Shown piece by piece: positions 52,149 through 58,558 of a stretch of 64,000 nt of DNA. Both the position numbers and the translations under genes were made by a program. How positions within the stretch are numbered: the stretch's first letter is position 1; every line of letters starts with the position of its first letter. Under the pieces are notes generated by a model, which was not told the DNA's origin, searched no databases, and saw only the letters and a program-made list of their open reading frames with translations. The DNA lies in sequence record LR756500.1, one strand, 5' to 3'.

Positions 52149-53381
52149 TTATTTTAGAGATTTTTTTAATTCTTTTAAATCATTAATATACATTTCTTTA
52201 GGAATTAATTTTTTAGTTTCAATTAATTCTGCCTTTTTAATTTCAAACTGATTCATTAATTCATCATATTTTTCTTTTGTTAATGAATGAATAGCCATTG
52301 ACAATAAATAAGAATAAGAATCATCAATTTTATCAAATTTTAACTTACTTAATGATTCAATTATTTTATCTTTAGGAACTTTATTAACTTTAATTTCATT
52401 ATCTATTATTCCCTTTATAAAGCGTGCTTTGTTAGATAATATTTTAACTTCATATTCTGATTTATCGATTAGATAATCTTTTCTTTTTTGATAGTAATTT
52501 AATCTAAAATCAACAAAATATTGAACTATATCTTTAGCAGATTTAAATATTTTAAGCTTTCCTGTTTCATCAAGAGTTGTTAAATTTTCAGTTTCATATT
52601 CTTGTAGCTTAAATAAATCTTCAATTTTTTCCTTTTTAAGGAAAGTCGCTAAATTTGTTCTAGAAAATTTAATTTCATAATTTATATTTTGTGAACAATT
52701 ATCTTCATATGAAGCTATTTCTTTTTTTGCTAATTTAGAATTTAAATGTTTTTCATATTTTTCATATGTTGTGCTAGGTGGTAATTCTGATATAATTATT
52801 GTACTTGTATTTGTTACTGCATATTTTCCTTCAAATATCCACCTGTTAGATTTTTCTTCATCTTTATAAATGCCTCCTGTAAAATCTTTAATCCATGGTG
52901 GTAATTCTCTAATTTTTTTACTATCTAAATGATCAAGACATGCATCAATTAATGTTTTTGGATTTCTATTTAATATATTTGTTGCAAATCCTACAGCAAT
53001 TCCTGAACTTCCATTTAATAATACAGTCGGTATTATGGGTAAGAAGAAATTCGGTTCAATTTCATTTCCTTCTTCTATTTTAGATTCTAATAATTCGAAA
53101 TCTTTATATAATAATCTAAAATTAGGATGTAACCTAGTTGATATATATCTAGGAGCTCCTGCTTCGGGAGATCTTAAACTACCAAATTGTCCAATTTCAT
53201 CTAGTAGTGGCATAGAATTTTTATAAGATTGTGCCATTCCTATAATTGCTTGATTTAATGCTGAATTATGAACTACTATTTTAGATTTACCTACTACAAA
53301 ACTTTCATATTCAGGAACTGATATATCATAATATTTTTTAGGTTCATTTAAAATATTAATTTTTATACTCTTTATTTTCAT
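52149..53381 (-). CDS. gyrA: Type II topoisomerase A subunit (gp52/GyrA-like), C-terminal fragment preceded by a 39-aa split-intein C part
   Basis: MKIKSIK...YDISV....F......VVHN|S, then AIIGMAQ, GQFGS, APRY (catalytic Tyr), PTVLLNG..GIAVGFATNI; no GyrA pinwheel CTD. Confidence 0.92.
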   Translation of the reverse strand: MKIKSIKINILNEPKKYYDISVPEYESFVVGKSKIVVHNSALNQAIIGMAQSYKNSMPLLDEIGQFGSLRSPEAGAPRYISTRLHPNFRLLYKDFELLESKIEEGNEIEPNFFLPIIPTVLLNGSSGIAVGFATNILNRNPKTLIDACLDHLDSKKIRELPPWIKDFTGGIYKDEEKSNRWIFEGKYAVTNTSTIIISELPPSTTYEKYEKHLNSKLAKKEIASYEDNCSQNINYEIKFSRTNLATFLKKEKIEDLFKLQEYETENLTTLDETGKLKIFKSAKDIVQYFVDFRLNYYQKRKDYLIDKSEYEVKILSNKARFIKGIIDNEIKVNKVPKDKIIESLSKLKFDKIDDSYSYLLSMAIHSLTKEKYDELMNQFEIKKAELIETKKLIPKEMYINDLKELKKSLK

Positions 53382-54280
53382 ATATTTTCATTTATAAAAT
53401 CAATACATAGTTTATAATTTTCTTCAATAGATTCTGTATCCCATATAACTAAAACTTTAAAATTATTTAATTTTGCTAATTGTATTTTTTCTTCAAATAT
53501 TTTTAAATATTTTTTATATCCTTCTTTAGTCATTGGATGATACCATTTATTTAATTTGTTAATATATCTATAATCTGGATGCCATCTACATCCATTAAAT
53601 TCTATTATTAATTTTTTTGTTTTAATTGTTAAATCATAGAAAAAATAACTATTATTTTTTCTTTCTAAATAAAATTCATTTTTATTTTTATTACTATCTC
53701 CATAATAAATATCATAAGTATTAATACTTTTATCGGTTATTAAATAATTTATAACTTTACTAAAAACTTTCATAGAAGCATTAGAAGCATTAGAATTAAA
53801 AGGTTTATAATACCCATTTCTTTTTATTAATATATTTTTAACTTTTAATTTTACTTCTTCTATTTGACCTGGATTAATAATTCCTTCTCCATATCTTTCT
53901 GTAAANNNNNNNNNNNNNNNNNNNNNTACTTTATCTCTTTGAAAAACATTTACAATTCCCTCAGTTTCTAATAATTTATTTTCCCAATTAATTCTAGATT
54001 TAGAGTTTTTAGAAAAATTATGTTTAGTTCCACAACTTTTGATATATCCAAGTTTTTTATTTTCATCTCCACATTTTTTAGAACAAGTTTCTTCACCATT
54101 TTTATTAAAATATTCTTTATCACATATTTTACACTTTTGATATTTTCTACATTTAGAACATTTAGTTGAATATAAATTTAAATCTTTTTCAATATATTTT
54201 AAACTTATAAATTTATTATTATATTCTTTATTACATCTTTTACATATTAAATTTTCATTTTTAATTTCTTTTAAATCCAT
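53378..54280 (-). CDS. Vsr-like (EDxHD) homing endonuclease; contains a 21-N assembly gap (53906-53926)
   Basis: FFYDL......IIEFNG.RWH...K...A...F.VL.IW; CKIC/TCSKKC Zn motifs. Confidence 0.8.
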   Translation of the reverse strand: MDLKEIKNENLICKRCNKEYNNKFISLKYIEKDLNLYSTKCSKCRKYQKCKICDKEYFNKNGEETCSKKCGDENKKLGYIKSCGTKHNFSKNSKSRINWENKLLETEGIVNVFQRDKVXXXXXXXFTERYGEGIINPGQIEEVKLKVKNILIKRNGYYKPFNSNASNASMKVFSKVINYLITDKSINTYDIYYGDSNKNKNEFYLERKNNSYFFYDLTIKTKKLIIEFNGCRWHPDYRYINKLNKWYHPMTKEGYKKYLKIFEEKIQLAKLNNFKVLVIWDTESIEENYKLCIDFINENI

Positions 54281-54331
54281 GTTTTATTTTATATATTAAC
54301 ATAAATTTAAGCTTTTTATTAGCATGAAGAC

Positions 54332-54871
54332 TTAGGTTAAATAAGATATAATATCATCACCTTCTTTTAAGTCTTTTACATATTTCCAAATATTACCTTT
54401 TAATAAAAATGGATGATACTCGGTAAATTTAAATATTTCGCCATTTTCCATTTCTATTTCGTATTCTTTATCTGTAATTTGACCTATACGTGCATTGCAT
54501 CCTTCAGCAATAACAAATTTATTATTAATATCATCAAATGCGATTATATTCATTTTTTTATTAGGGTAGTTTTCAGCCCATTCACCAATTTTAATATAAC
54601 TACCGTCTTCTAATAAAATAGGAGTATCATAATCCCCGCAGTCACCATGATGATAAAAAGCTTCTGCAGATACTTTACCTCCTAATTGAAATACTTTTAA
54701 AGGTTTTTCTTTACCTGTCTTCCAAATTTTATTTGCAATAAAAACTATTTTTCTTGCTGTAGGTTTTAACCCATCAATTACGGATGGAATTGCTCTATGT
54801 TCAACTACGTATTGTGCATACTCTAAATAATCTTCATCACAATATTGTGATATTGTTTTATTATTTACCAT
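54332..54871 (-). CDS. gyrA: Type II topoisomerase A subunit, N-terminal fragment + 102-aa split-intein N part
   Basis: RAIPSVIDGLKPTARK, YHHGD|CGDYDT.I, block B FT.YHPF, W..VKDLK.GD.I. Confidence 0.92.
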   Translation of the reverse strand: MVNNKTISQYCDEDYLEYAQYVVEHRAIPSVIDGLKPTARKIVFIANKIWKTGKEKPLKVFQLGGKVSAEAFYHHGDCGDYDTPILLEDGSYIKIGEWAENYPNKKMNIIAFDDINNKFVIAEGCNARIGQITDKEYEIEMENGEIFKFTEYHPFLLKGNIWKYVKDLKEGDDIISYLT

Positions 54872-54879
54872 AAATGTGT

Positions 54880-55614
54880 TTAAAATAAAGCTGTTTCTAA
54901 AATTAAAGGTTCACCTAATATTTTTTCTTTTCGTTCATCAGATTCCCCAGCAAACCAAGCTGATAATGTACTTTGATATTCTCCATCCTTTGTAATTTTT
55001 ATTACTTTAGGATTTTTTAATATTTCTTCATACTCATAATCTTCCAATGAAGCTAATCCCTTTTTATATTCTACATTCCAACTTTTAACATCTTTAATAG
55101 AATGCTCCCATTTATCATATTCATCTTGAGTATAAAAATAATTTATAGCAGTTCCTTTTTTAGTTACAACTAACGGAGTCATAACTTTATATATTTTTTC
55201 CTGCTCGAATAATTCTGGCCAATATTTTGCAAAGAAATGTATTAATGCGCCTGCAATAGCATTACCATCTGGATCAGCATCTGTATAAATATATAATTTT
55301 CCATATCTTAATCCAGCAGGTACTTCACCTAATTTTAATCCTACTGCGCCCATTAAACCTAATACTTCTTCGTTTTTAATTACTTTAGCATTAGTTAATT
55401 CACTTACATTAATAAATTTACCTTTTAATGGAAAAGCTCCAAACTTTTGAGAATCTCTAAATTTACGTACGGCTGAAAGGGCTGAATTGTGTGAAATAAT
55501 TCCATTAGATAAAATAAAACTCTCATCTTCATCTATTGCTATATCGACGACATTTTTATATCCATTATCTTTAATATACTCTATATCACATAATTCTAAA
55601 AAATTATTTTCCAT
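54880..55614 (-). CDS. gyrB: Type II topoisomerase B subunit TOPRIM fragment preceded by a 43-aa split-intein C part
   Basis: VVDIAI....SFILSNGIISHN|SA, FPLKGK, LRYGK..I.TDAD.DG..I, YKKGLAS. Confidence 0.92.
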   Translation of the reverse strand: MENNFLELCDIEYIKDNGYKNVVDIAIDEDESFILSNGIISHNSALSAVRKFRDSQKFGAFPLKGKFINVSELTNAKVIKNEEVLGLMGAVGLKLGEVPAGLRYGKLYIYTDADPDGNAIAGALIHFFAKYWPELFEQEKIYKVMTPLVVTKKGTAINYFYTQDEYDKWEHSIKDVKSWNVEYKKGLASLEDYEYEEILKNPKVIKITKDGEYQSTLSAWFAGESDERKEKILGEPLILETALF

Positions 55615-56725
55615 ATTTACTAATCTTTTCTATTAATTCATTAATATTAATACTACATTTACCTTTTTTTCCTAAGTTTACTTTAGCATCAACTAAAGCT
55701 AAATTTTCAATATGACCTATTATATTAGGACTAATCATATTTAAAAATCCAAATTTAATACTTATCATATGATCTAGATGTAACTTATTTTCCTTTTTAT
55801 ATTTTTTCCATTCTACACCAAATTTTGCTTTTCCACCTATTAATAAATTATAGTTGGTTTCATCCCATACTAATTGTGAATATATTAAATATTCATATTT
55901 TTTATCTTTAGGAATTAATTCGTATCCTTTTTCAATTAATGAAATAAGTCTATTTGATGTTCTTTTATTTATTAATTTTAACCCTTTATCAATTCCGTAT
56001 TTATCTATATAATCTTCATTAGAAGAAGAGCAGGTTGCTTTCCAATGTTCTAATTTAATAGTAGCATCATCTACACCATATTTATTTATCAAATTTGTTA
56101 GTGTTATTGCTTTTTTAGCACATAGTTGTTTCCACAAATCTTCACCGCTATCTCCATAATTATCTAAATAATATTGTTTACTGTTACTATATTTACTTTT
56201 TTTACAAAAATCTTCATATTTGTAAATTCCTTGTTCTTCTCCATATTTAGTAATAAAATATTTTTTATTTCTACTTTGACTTTTTTTATAGTCATCATAA
56301 TTTTTATGATTAATTAAATAAAATGGTGACTTATTATTTTTATGAATATAATCTAATGCTTCATTTTTATTTAAATTTAAAGTTAACGAAATAAATTCAG
56401 CAGAATTAGAATTCATTTTTAAGCCAGGACAATTTAAATTTTTTCCATAACAATAATTTTTATTATAATTACCGGTTCTCTTACCATATTGTATATTTGA
56501 AATAAATACTTGATTATCTTTAATATCAAATTCTAAATAAAAATTATGATTGTATTCTTTATTACATATATTACATTTTTTAATTTTAAATCCTAAACTT
56601 ATTAAATAATTAATTAAATTTATATTATTTTTAATTAACAACTTTTTAACAACGGCTCCAATTAATTCTATTTTAGAAGATTTAAAATATTTTTTTTCAT
56701 TATTTATTATGATATAATATTGCAT
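55604..56725 (-). CDS. HNH homing endonuclease with KYG repeats
   Basis: Four (K/N)YG repeats; C-terminal HLDH.IS......G...NL......N..K. Confidence 0.75.
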   Translation of the reverse strand: MQYYIIINNEKKYFKSSKIELIGAVVKKLLIKNNINLINYLISLGFKIKKCNICNKEYNHNFYLEFDIKDNQVFISNIQYGKRTGNYNKNYCYGKNLNCPGLKMNSNSAEFISLTLNLNKNEALDYIHKNNKSPFYLINHKNYDDYKKSQSRNKKYFITKYGEEQGIYKYEDFCKKSKYSNSKQYYLDNYGDSGEDLWKQLCAKKAITLTNLINKYGVDDATIKLEHWKATCSSSNEDYIDKYGIDKGLKLINKRTSNRLISLIEKGYELIPKDKKYEYLIYSQLVWDETNYNLLIGGKAKFGVEWKKYKKENKLHLDHMISIKFGFLNMISPNIIGHIENLALVDAKVNLGKKGKCSININELIEKISKYGK

Positions 56726-56739
56726 ATGTTTTATTTTAT

Positions 56740-56775
56740 ATATTTGAAGGCTACTAGTACTTTTCCTTCAAATAT
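56740..56775. other. 11-bp hairpin overlapping the gyrB-N stop codon and the promoter-like motif of the HNH gene
   Basis: ATATTTGAAGG (56740-56750) / CCTTCAAATAT (56765-56775). Confidence 0.5.
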
Positions 56776-58558
56776 GTAGAACGTTAACGAAAAACATTAT
56801 ATCTTTATTTATTTCTGTAATATCTAACATTTTTATTTCATTTGTAATTATATTAAATATTGCCAATTTTGTATTAACAGTTATTAATAATTCATCATTT
56901 TTTAAAATAATTTTATATTTAAATTTTTTATCATTTATTTCAATAATATCCAATATTTCATCAAGTGATTTTAAATATATTAATTTATTTTTAACAAATT
57001 GATGATATTCTATATTTATATCTTTAACTTGTACCCAATCAAATAAATTATTTCTTTTATCATATAAATAAAAAGCGTGCTTTTCAGTAGGTTCAATTAT
57101 ACCTACTCCTTTTATTTTTATTTGTTTAACTTTTTCTATTCTTTTTGATATTTGGTTTACATCACGTAATCTATTTTTATGAGTAATTACAGTATCTGTT
57201 ATTTTTAAATCTTTTATTTTTATATCTTCTAAAAATGAGTCTCTTAATACTTTTACAAATGTATTTTCTTCTAAACATAGTCCCTCGAATATTCCTAATA
57301 TACAATGATTTCTTTGTCCTTTTGCTTTTGCATCAATTAATTTTTCAACTTTAGTAGAAGATAAATTTTTATTTAATTTTCTTAATTCTCTTCTTTCTTC
57401 TGCAGATTTTTTCTTTTCTAACCAATCTAAAACATTTTTAACTATATCAGATTCAAATACTGCCTTCATAAAGGTATCTGATACTATATGTTCTGTACCA
57501 AAATCTATTTGAGCTGTTATAAGTTTTTCCTTTGTTTGGGATCCAAATGAACTATTAATAACAGTAGCATTAACAAATAAAAACATATATTGTTTTAGTT
57601 CTGATGGTTTAACATCTATTTTATATTTCTTTTGTATTTTATCTCGTAACCAATTTATTATTTGATTAATTATATAATCAACATGAGTTCCACCTTCCTT
57701 TGTTTCAACTGAATTAACAAATGAAACGTGTCTATAACCATCTTTTGATAATCCTAACCCTATTTGCCAATCTTTTGATTTTTCGTAAAATACATGTGGA
57801 ACATATAATTCAGTATATTTATGAAAATCAGAATATTTTAATAATTTTTCATTTAAATATATTTTAAGATTAGGATTACAGGCTGCAATATCTATTAATC
57901 GTTTTGTTATAATATCTTTACTAATTTCATCTATACCTATTTTTAACATTCCAAATTTATCTAAATCTGGATAATAAATTATTTCAGTATAATGTTTTGT
58001 AGTGGTTTTAATAATAGGATTAGATCGTTTACGCATGTTTTCAGTAAATTCCTGTTCAAATGATTTTTCACCATCTGCAGTTTTAACAATAAACTTTTTA
58101 CTAAAAATATTTGTAAGTGTTGCTCCTTCACCGTGCAAGCCTGCTCCTGTTCGATCATCAACATCATTAAAATTACTGCCTGCTTTTAATTCAGAAAATA
58201 ACATTTCCGGTATATAAATATTTTCTACTGGATGTATTTCTACTGGAATTCCACCATTATCCCATATTGATATAAAATTTTCAGTTGTATTAATTGTAAC
58301 TTTAATTGTATTTAATAGTGAATCTTTATTTTTGAATTCATCAACTGAATTTGAAATAATTTCATCAAATAATTTCAAAAATCCAGGATTGAATGTAATA
58401 TCGTAAAGTTCAAATTTTTGAGAATCTTCATCAAATAAATATGATTCTCTTTTATGAAATGAAGTAGATCCAATATATCGTCCAGGTCTTAAAAGAACAT
58501 GATCTACATCATCTAATTTTTTGTATTTATTTGCTAAAAAATCTTTTGATTTTTTCAT
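56768..58558 (-). CDS. gyrB: Type II topoisomerase B subunit ATPase fragment + 169-aa split-intein N part
   Basis: HVLLRPG.YIGS, FDEII.NSVDE, WDNG.GIP, GSNF.D, G.HG.GA, KL.DA, EGL|CL.ENT.V, block B T.KH.F. Confidence 0.93.
   Translation of the reverse strand: MKKSKDFLANKYKKLDDVDHVLLRPGRYIGSTSFHKRESYLFDEDSQKFELYDITFNPGFLKLFDEIISNSVDEFKNKDSLLNTIKVTINTTENFISIWDNGGIPVEIHPVENIYIPEMLFSELKAGSNFNDVDDRTGAGLHGEGATLTNIFSKKFIVKTADGEKSFEQEFTENMRKRSNPIIKTTTKHYTEIIYYPDLDKFGMLKIGIDEISKDIITKRLIDIAACNPNLKIYLNEKLLKYSDFHKYTELYVPHVFYEKSKDWQIGLGLSKDGYRHVSFVNSVETKEGGTHVDYIINQIINWLRDKIQKKYKIDVKPSELKQYMFLFVNATVINSSFGSQTKEKLITAQIDFGTEHIVSDTFMKAVFESDIVKNVLDWLEKKKSAEERRELRKLNKNLSSTKVEKLIDAKAKGQRNHCILGIFEGLCLEENTFVKVLRDSFLEDIKIKDLKITDTVITHKNRLRDVNQISKRIEKVKQIKIKGVGIIEPTEKHAFYLYDKRNNLFDWVQVKDINIEYHQFVKNKLIYLKSLDEILDIIEINDKKFKYKIILKNDELLITVNTKLAIFNIITNEIKMLDITEINKDIMFFVNVLHI

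Follow-up and report, generated by a model that had tools for sequence, protein, structure and literature searches.

A probable split intein in the gp52-like subunit of an uncultured phage topoisomerase II encoded in four pieces

Why would a phage encode one subunit of an essential enzyme in two pieces, with a third gene wedged between them? The question is raised by LR756500.1, the unannotated genome of an uncultured phage (462,018 bp, G+C about 23%), which is contained in public runs from groundwater metagenomes. We analyzed a 64,000-nucleotide (nt) stretch of it, here called the window, whose minus strand carries six consecutive open reading frames (ORFs) spanning both subunits of a T4-type topoisomerase II. 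Three of these make up the A (gp52/GyrA-like) subunit locus: an N fragment (54871-54332; 179 amino acids, aa) that consists of the subunit's N-terminal part and an extra tail, an endonuclease ORF (54280-53378; 300 codons as written, with a run of 21 N), and a C fragment (53381-52149; 410 aa) that consists of a short leader and the remainder of gp52. An earlier note on this DNA read the tail and the leader as the halves of a split intein, the second such intein in the enzyme, and the ORFs, coordinates and junction residues that it gave were all found on the minus strand as described. The explanation that we consider highly likely is that of a fractured gene, in which a mini-intein at YHHGD/S (a slash marks the splice junction) in the gp52-like subunit was invaded by a free-standing Vsr-like homing endonuclease gene. 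Judging from the residues conserved in the sequence, the two halves very probably trans-splice after translation.

The intein halves of the A subunit

The N fragment divides into an N-extein ending in YHHGD (residues 1-77; 54641..54871, minus strand) and an N-terminal intein half, IntN, of 102 aa (residues 78-179; 54335..54640, minus strand), whose Cys1 codon lies at 54640-54638 and whose stop lies at 54334-54332. The C fragment begins with a C-terminal intein half, IntC, of 39 aa that runs from MKIKSIK to VVHN (53265..53381, minus strand), followed by a C-extein of 371 aa plus stop (52149..53264, minus strand). Ser40 of the C fragment (codon 53264-53262) directly follows VVHN and is the +1 residue. 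When joined, the exteins read YHHGD-SAL and the ligated subunit has 448 aa; the APRY tyrosine, residue 79 of the C fragment (53147-53145), stands 39 residues past the junction.

Both halves are recognized by curated intein models. TIGR01445 (intein_Nterm) matches residues 78-156 of the N fragment with 38.7 bits, against a cut-off of 24.5, and TIGR01443 (intein_Cterm) matches residues 18-40 of the C fragment with 27.2 bits, against a cut-off of 15.6. The exteins are continuous on the gp52 profile phrog_551, where residues 2-83 of the N fragment occupy positions 7-86 (E 1.6e-23) and residues 40-409 of the C fragment occupy positions 81-453 (E 9.7e-114). GyrA/ParC models match the N fragment at residues 3-87, and the profile of the breakage-reunion domain is covered across both fragments, with the active-site APRY in the C-extein. 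The second split intein proposed for the A subunit is thus confirmed at the level of both intein halves and of the host protein. A 635-kb relative, LR745206.1, has an unbroken A subunit, with YHHGNASL where the junction would be, and its intact gene is 59.5% identical to the N-extein; intact relatives in general read YHHG[DN]-x-SL at this site. The C-extein is 57-69% identical to many homologs, both intact and fractured.

A search with the single IntN sequence gave only a weak intein match (E 0.05), and we therefore used a profile of 28 IntN homologs. Its best match among solved inteins is NrdJ-1 (8ubs_A, E 3.5e-8), followed by the DnaB, DnaX and DnaE inteins. The predicted complex of IntN (72-179) with IntC (1-46) scored 0.74, compared with 0.01 for the best control; in a benchmark, that score was attained by 51/78 solved complexes and by 2/108 mismatched pairs. 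The prediction runs share at least 92% of contacts, with a partner pLDDT of at least 76. These results support association of the two halves, in that the prediction favors binding, short of proof.

The residues required for splicing, which are those of a class 1 intein, are widely conserved. Searching with the 179-aa fragment retrieved 54 further clusters (167-186 aa, 44-68% identity over the full length, on contigs of up to 566 kb). A junction is recognizable in 54 sequences, of which this copy is one, and in every one of them the intein comes after YHHG[D/N/S], has Cys as its first residue and contains the block-B motif TxxH, which here is T-E-Y-H within FTEYHPF; T73 and H76 are invariant in the IntN alignment (A4). 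On the other side, all 45 fractured C pieces among the best 120 C-fragment homologs start with MKIK and have an IntC that ends in HN, the +1 residue being Ser in 43 and Thr in two. The commonest layout in relatives is an N fragment, an endonuclease of about 300 aa and a C fragment, and in other samples this same three-gene layout recurs on over 20 independent contigs.

The endonuclease gene between the halves

The gene that separates the halves (53378..54280, minus strand) is recognized as a free-standing homing endonuclease gene by its fold, its motif and its 33 homologs (301-330 aa, 34-41% identity), some of which bear the JGI name very-short-patch-repair endonuclease. A Cys-rich, putative DNA-binding module occupies residues 1-118, and the family alignment places eight invariant Cys within the first 70 residues. 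Residues from about 160 to 300 (53381-53803) correspond to a Vsr-like nuclease domain, with D190, E202, D216, E227, H234, W246, K265 and W280 invariant. In sequence spacing, and in that only, D216, E227 and H234 (11 and 18 residues) match D51, position 62 and H69 of Vsr as given by Dassa et al. (PMC2677866), who noted a family-specific Glu at position 62. After H234 there is no invariant Asp, and the candidates for the last acidic position of the motif are E253, which is nearly invariant, and K265, which is invariant. An AF2 model of residues 126-300 has a pLDDT of 87.8. The top three Foldseek matches to it are 1cw0_A (Vsr, E 5e-3), 1vsr and 3r3p_B (I-Bth0305I), none of which reaches E 0.001, and VIA-align returned 3r3p_A at Z 10.2 (root-mean-square deviation 2.7 Å, 94/97 residues, 22% identity), 3hrl at Z 9.6 and 1cw0_A at Z 9.5. 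Predicted fold and motif together support a Vsr-like/EDxHD endonuclease with a different DNA-binding module.

In most lineages the Cys-rich module is followed by a Vsr-like nuclease domain, but the relatives L005 (8958-9878), L039, L044 and L045 have an HNH-like domain attached to it. Within a single homing endonuclease lineage, and at the same target site, nuclease domains have been swapped.

The sequence of the gene is interrupted by a run of 21 N at 53906..53926, which masks codons 119-125. It is the sole N run of the window and falls outside the intein halves and the topoisomerase exteins. A different architecture across this gap had been named beforehand as a possible refutation of the split-intein claim. 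On either side of the gap one of three frames is open, on the same strand and in frame with the other (118 + 7 + 175 codons plus stop). In a 22-row alignment, each of the 21 homologs from other genomes (35-44% identity) fills the masked columns with exactly seven residues and shows no insertion or deletion there, and two full-length homologs in a separate comparison likewise have seven residues there. Since a single frame is open on each side and every aligned homolog has seven residues, continuity and frame of the endonuclease are well supported; the gap lies inside the endonuclease gene and the intein claim is untouched. A 300-aa protein, P0217, is listed at 98% identity and 100% coverage for a contig of 462,018 bp, a listing whose residues were not read.

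A 51-nt spacer (54281..54331, minus strand) separates the N fragment from the endonuclease gene and contains most of the 18-mer ATATATAAAATAAAACAT, as well as a possible hairpin over the start codon. The 18-mer stands at 54296-54279 (minus strand) and runs into the start codon of the endonuclease. An identical copy at 56743-56726 (minus strand) runs into the start codon of the endonuclease in the locus of the neighboring B (gp39/GyrB-like) subunit, which suggests control signals common to mobile cassettes. ATATATAAAATAAAACAT contains the T4-late-promoter-like TATAAAATA; matches of this type number three within the window, a count equaled or exceeded in 8 of 100 shuffles. The hairpin over the A-locus endonuclease start is weak (-9.5 kcal/mol), and the hairpins upstream of both endonuclease genes are not significantly stabler than shuffles (z -1.5 and -1.9). 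A scan for sigma-70 promoters and terminators was uninformative, with 56 sites against 64.8 expected. At the other end of the gene, the endonuclease stop overlaps the IntC ATG by 4 nt (ATGA, 53378-53381), and in the B locus the 3' end of the endonuclease gene overlaps the IntC ORF by 11 nt.

Mobility, neighboring inteins and rival explanations

Related phages, which the earlier note had proposed to survey for intact and fractured alleles, carry both. Among the 120 best C-fragment homologs, 45 are fractured, 74 are intact and intein-less (446-455 aa), and one, P0099 (593 aa, lineage L015), has this intein in one uninterrupted stretch, at the identical site. A second uninterrupted-intein allele was found in L032, and the endonuclease is truncated or absent in L003, L030, L041 and L042. 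Four kinds of allele therefore exist at this one site: empty, with a cis-intein, fractured, and with a decayed endonuclease. A tree of 114 C-exteins, built with FastTree only and excluding six intact rows without a recognizable junction motif, calls for at least 18 state changes, of which at least 10 are forced by well-supported branches, versus about 36 for shuffled labels. Near-identical exteins can differ in intein state, for example P0102 and P0141. Because presence of the element flips among near-identical exteins and its endonuclease decays or is lost, it fits a mobile, repeatedly gained and lost, selfish homing element. A tblastn search with IntC of 50,697 phage records gave the window's own record as its sole match, so that no cultured phage among them carries the intein. 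A JGI contig of 7.4 kb encodes a 167-aa gp52 N fragment, P0055, in which the intein follows KVASD, seven residues upstream of the YHHGD site; this shift stems from a second insertion point or else from a local deletion.

The B subunit, immediately upstream, is split in the same way. Its N fragment (56768..58558, minus strand; ORF 58558-56768, 596 aa) comprises the subunit's N-terminal part, a 427-aa extein ending in GIFEGL, and an extra tail, a 169-aa IntN with its Cys codon at 57277-57275. An HNH-type free-standing endonuclease gene (55604..56725, minus strand; ORF 56725-55604, 373 aa), matched by phrog_22677 and phrog_5104, separates it from the C fragment (54880..55614, minus strand; ORF 55614-54880, 244 aa), which has a short leader, a 43-aa IntC ending in ISHN, and the Toprim part of the subunit, beginning SALSAV. 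Residues 2-426 of the N fragment fall on positions 18-444 of phrog_543 and residues 43-232 of the C fragment on positions 445-636. The B IntC scores 21.7 bits against TIGR01443 (cut-off 15.6). TIGR01445 fails to recognize the 169-aa B IntN, for which reason we turned to a profile-profile comparison; when the B IntN family is aligned to that of A, Cys1 and TxxH fall in register (hhalign probability 81%, E 1.2e-5). A full-length ortholog of the B-locus endonuclease, 51% identical, occupies the same position in L022, and in LR745206.1 the large subunit is intact and reads GIFEGDSAAG. With the adjacent B subunit split in the same way as A, the topoisomerase is encoded as four polypeptides and needs two splicing reactions, as had been proposed. 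Both C-exteins do begin Ser-Ala-Leu (SALNQA in A, SALSAV in B).

The residue before the B intein (57278-57280, minus strand) stands in the place of the Asp in the Toprim EGDSA motif, which the intact relative retains. This genome, L022 and L043 have Leu there, L003 and L018 have Asp, L005 has Phe and L023 has Met. The B IntN is also about 70 aa longer than usual, and its C-terminal 75 aa or so (56771-57000, minus strand) are conserved in relatives (alignment A5) without an identified fold. By eye this extension resembles a decayed IntC or a block-B repeat, a likeness that was dropped after BLAST gave a non-significant E of 0.06.

The earlier note also supposed that the two pairs do not cross-react. 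In global alignment, A and B share about 29% identity in IntN and about 32% in IntC; with BLAST, the IntC halves are 45% identical over 31 aa and the IntN halves only about 26%. Net charges are -9 for IntN and +3 for IntC in A, and +3 and -8 in B, which is the opposite polarity. Low identity and opposite polarity make orthogonality of the two pairs plausible. Of the 16 unrelated split inteins of Pinto et al. 2020 (PMC7090010), 15 were mutually orthogonal, and orthogonality here is therefore expected rather than remarkable.

Nor is the pair unusual within its own genome. For the genome-wide reading, LR756500.1 was used together with the near-identical G001 (IMG/VR, 429 kb). LR756500.1 has seven intein_Cterm matches above the cut-off and six split inteins, the fractured genes being those of both topoisomerase subunits, a family-B DNA polymerase, a clamp loader, the ribonucleotide reductase large subunit and PhoH. 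The further intein loci lie at about 39.4, 208.8-210.6, 249.6-251.8, 257.4-259.0 and 276.9-277.9 kb, read from L009-L013 of G001, and the four further fractured genes have endonuclease genes between their halves. As a statement of uniqueness, two split inteins in one enzyme was thus an overstatement: the fractured-gene type is known, it recurs in dozens of metagenomic phages, and this genome has six split inteins, not two.

Some of these loci have features of their own. The split intein of the family-B DNA polymerase has Ser1 and Ser+1 and sits at the DTD/S motif, and ThyX of LR756500.1 has a contiguous intein containing HNH. The PhoH intein (L013:1595-4419, minus strand, G001) is split atypically inside the P-loop (GKAG/C ... 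SSHN/TGKT); its IntN has only about 26 aa, and an IntC of about 175 aa holds block B plus F and G, as in atypically split terminase inteins.

Relatives extend the pattern. B is fractured alongside A in this genome, L003, L005, L018/L026, L022, L023/24 and L043, and intact in about 14 others; a fractured large subunit thus accompanies about a third of the surveyed lineages with a fractured A subunit. In L018 (3679-6633, minus strand; the same as L026, a 103-kb relative), the large subunit is spread over three ORFs of 583, 209 and 177 aa, with junctions FEGD/C...HN/SAS and YTDAD/C...HN/CDGN. With B in three pieces joined by two split inteins, plus a fractured A, the enzyme of L018 is encoded as five pieces and requires three trans-splicing reactions.

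How such a locus arose and works can be proposed in outline. A Vsr-like endonuclease gene would have invaded the mini-intein at the usual endonuclease insertion point. It would have carried in a stop codon, a short spacer and start signals of its own, and supplied the downstream half with a start codon. It is because of this new stop and start that the A subunit would be made as two polypeptides. The acidic IntN and basic IntC would then associate and rebuild the HINT fold, whereupon Cys1, the block-B Thr and His, the terminal His-Asn and Ser+1 would effect trans-splicing to a normal 448-aa subunit, which would pair with the likewise trans-spliced large subunit. The endonuclease, whose activity and target we infer, would cut the intein-less alleles of co-infecting relatives, and repair would copy the whole cassette in.

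Several observations weigh against this explanation. The high score of the predicted complex may come from the model's memory of solved split inteins. The sequencing runs with the locus, all from groundwater metagenomes, are of DNA only, with no RNA run among them. The endonuclease, called Vsr-like/EDxHD in the earlier note, earns that name by fold and motif only: direct searches of PDB sequences, with the single sequence and with the 22-row profile, found neither Vsr nor I-Bth0305I. Finally, block F is Glu-Ser-Phe here and in a few close relatives but His-Asn-Phe in 41 of 45 family members, and splicing could be slower or impaired as a result. The cis-intein relative P0099 also lacks the block-F His (E-N-F). 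Since P0099 must splice to yield an essential enzyme, this His is probably dispensable in the subclade.

It was further suggested that the arrangement is a post-translational control point for phage DNA replication. Trans-splicing would then act as a switch that times the topoisomerase and, through it, replication, an idea that is compatible with a fractured gene of selfish origin and draws on two observations: six replication or nucleotide-metabolism proteins of this genome need trans-splicing, and the 18-nt late-promoter-like motif is common to both endonuclease genes. The polymorphism of the element argues otherwise. It comes and goes among near-identical exteins, with the state changes seen in the 114-row tree; close relatives do with intact genes; the decay of the endonuclease in some lineages fits the homing cycle of a selfish element; and no sensor or conditional feature was found. 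We therefore think a switch improbable, the element fitting a selfish rather than a regulatory one. The broader version, in which the six trans-spliced proteins have been co-opted to gate the onset of replication in a coordinated, post-translational way and the six inteins have co-evolved to be mutually orthogonal with alternating charge polarity, strikes us as a long shot of the same order.

Alternatively, the intein halves may no longer splice and may serve as non-covalent docking domains. Split phage enzymes that do not splice exist, namely T4 39/mobA/60 (gp39/gp60) and Aeh1 nrdA (NrdA) (PMC2988022; bioRxiv 10.1101/2022.08.31.505936), and the missing block-F His of this copy would agree with a loss of splicing. 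Against docking, all splicing residues are kept in 54 IntN and 45 IntC clusters, which would be unexpected for mere docking tails, and the cis-intein alleles of the same family must splice. An insert of 141 aa in a conserved motif beside the active site would, moreover, probably disturb the fold. We find docking very improbable. An assembly artefact tied to the N run in the region, with contigs misjoined or the middle ORF in truth two genes, has almost nothing to recommend it, given the recurrence of the layout on contigs from other samples, the position of the gap within one endonuclease frame that 21/21 homologs match in length, and the 300-aa product listed for the 462-kb contig.

Taken together, the results favor a fractured gene carrying a selfish split intein. 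They add a T4-type topoisomerase II, in both of its subunits, to the proteins fractured by split inteins. No new kind of mechanism is revealed, as the fractured-gene arrangement was already known; the host protein is new. Public metagenomes hold a natural series at a single site, from empty through cis mini-intein and fractured alleles (with a Vsr- or HNH-type nuclease on the shared module) to alleles whose endonuclease is decayed or missing, and this series is suited to studying how homing endonucleases break inteins and genes. The short-intein family (IntN of about 100 aa, IntC of 39 aa, Cys1/Ser+1) offers candidate orthogonal tools for protein ligation, with six co-resident pairs here and up to three pairs in one enzyme in relatives. 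Since a large number of orthogonal split inteins is already available, in practical terms this is an incremental gain.

Comparison with known systems

The mycobacterial GyrA intein lies directly after the catalytic Tyr, whereas the phage A intein lies 39 residues upstream, at YH(P)HGD/S. Bacteria commonly carry contiguous inteins in GyrA and GyrB (Novikova et al. 2016, PMC4760082; NCBIfam NF038098, GyrA_w_intein). Those inteins resemble the phage ones in residing in type IIA topoisomerase subunits, near active-site motifs; unlike the phage A intein, they are cis-splicing and belong to cellular gyrases. A literature search, with subscription journals outside its scope, found no earlier report of a split intein in the gp52 subunit. 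For the large subunit, one metagenomic ORF interrupted by a Vsr endonuclease between Hint domains has been described (bioRxiv 10.1101/2022.08.31.505936).

In T4 the MobA HNH cassette breaks the large subunit into genes 39 and 60, and no intein is involved (PMC2988022; bioRxiv 10.1101/2022.08.31.505936). As at T4 39/mobA/60, a T4-type topoisomerase II gene is broken in the Toprim region by a free-standing homing endonuclease, and as with T4 mobA there is repeated gain and loss among relatives, with endonuclease types swapped. In contrast to the phage studied here, the T4 pieces stay separate, held together by added tails, and a 50-nt translational bypass is involved. The T4 break is in the large subunit and at another site; phrog_7229, which we read as gp60-like, starts about 30 residues after the B junction of this phage.

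The endonuclease of the A locus is comparable to I-Bth0305I (Taylor et al. 2011, PMC3239194; 3R3P) and to E. coli Vsr in the fold of its C-terminal nuclease domain, as predicted by the model, and in its Asp/Glu/His spacing, which is as in Vsr. With I-Bth0305I and the EDxHD family it shares a two-part build, here a putative N-terminal DNA-binding region followed by the nuclease domain. It departs from I-Bth0305I and Vsr in having no significant PDB sequence match, no clearly placed last acidic residue (D97 in Vsr, D222 in I-Bth0305I) and an invariant K265. Its N-terminal module is also different from that of I-Bth0305I, and it is free-standing between intein halves, whereas I-Bth0305I lies inside an intron.

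The closest precedent is the set of fractured genes that Dassa et al. 2009 (PMC2677866) described at 26 loci, covering eight enzyme types. At these loci a free-standing endonuclease gene, GIY-YIG or Vsr-like, stands between the halves of a split intein. Members include gp41-1, gp41-8, NrdJ-1, IMPDH-1, NrdA-2 and others; the spacer is 27-51 nt long, a 5' hairpin is accompanied by a late-promoter-like element, and at its 3' end the endonuclease gene overlaps the IntC ORF by 6-69 nt. The A locus follows this plan closely: on one strand it has the N half with its IntN, a 51-nt spacer, a Vsr-like endonuclease gene whose 3' end overlaps the IntC start, and the IntC with the C half, all in a phage host. 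The IntN of about 100 aa and IntC of about 40 aa are oppositely charged, as in that set, and Cys1 and Ser+1 are those of NrdJ-1, the closest solved relative of the A IntN family. The two differ in that the host protein, a topoisomerase II, is outside the eight enzyme types, that the A-locus overlap of 4 nt is below the 6-69 nt range, and that the N-terminal module of the endonuclease is Cys-rich, with eight invariant Cys, where theirs has NUMOD repeats. They differ as well in extent, since here the fracturing affects both subunits of the same enzyme, and six genes of a single genome.

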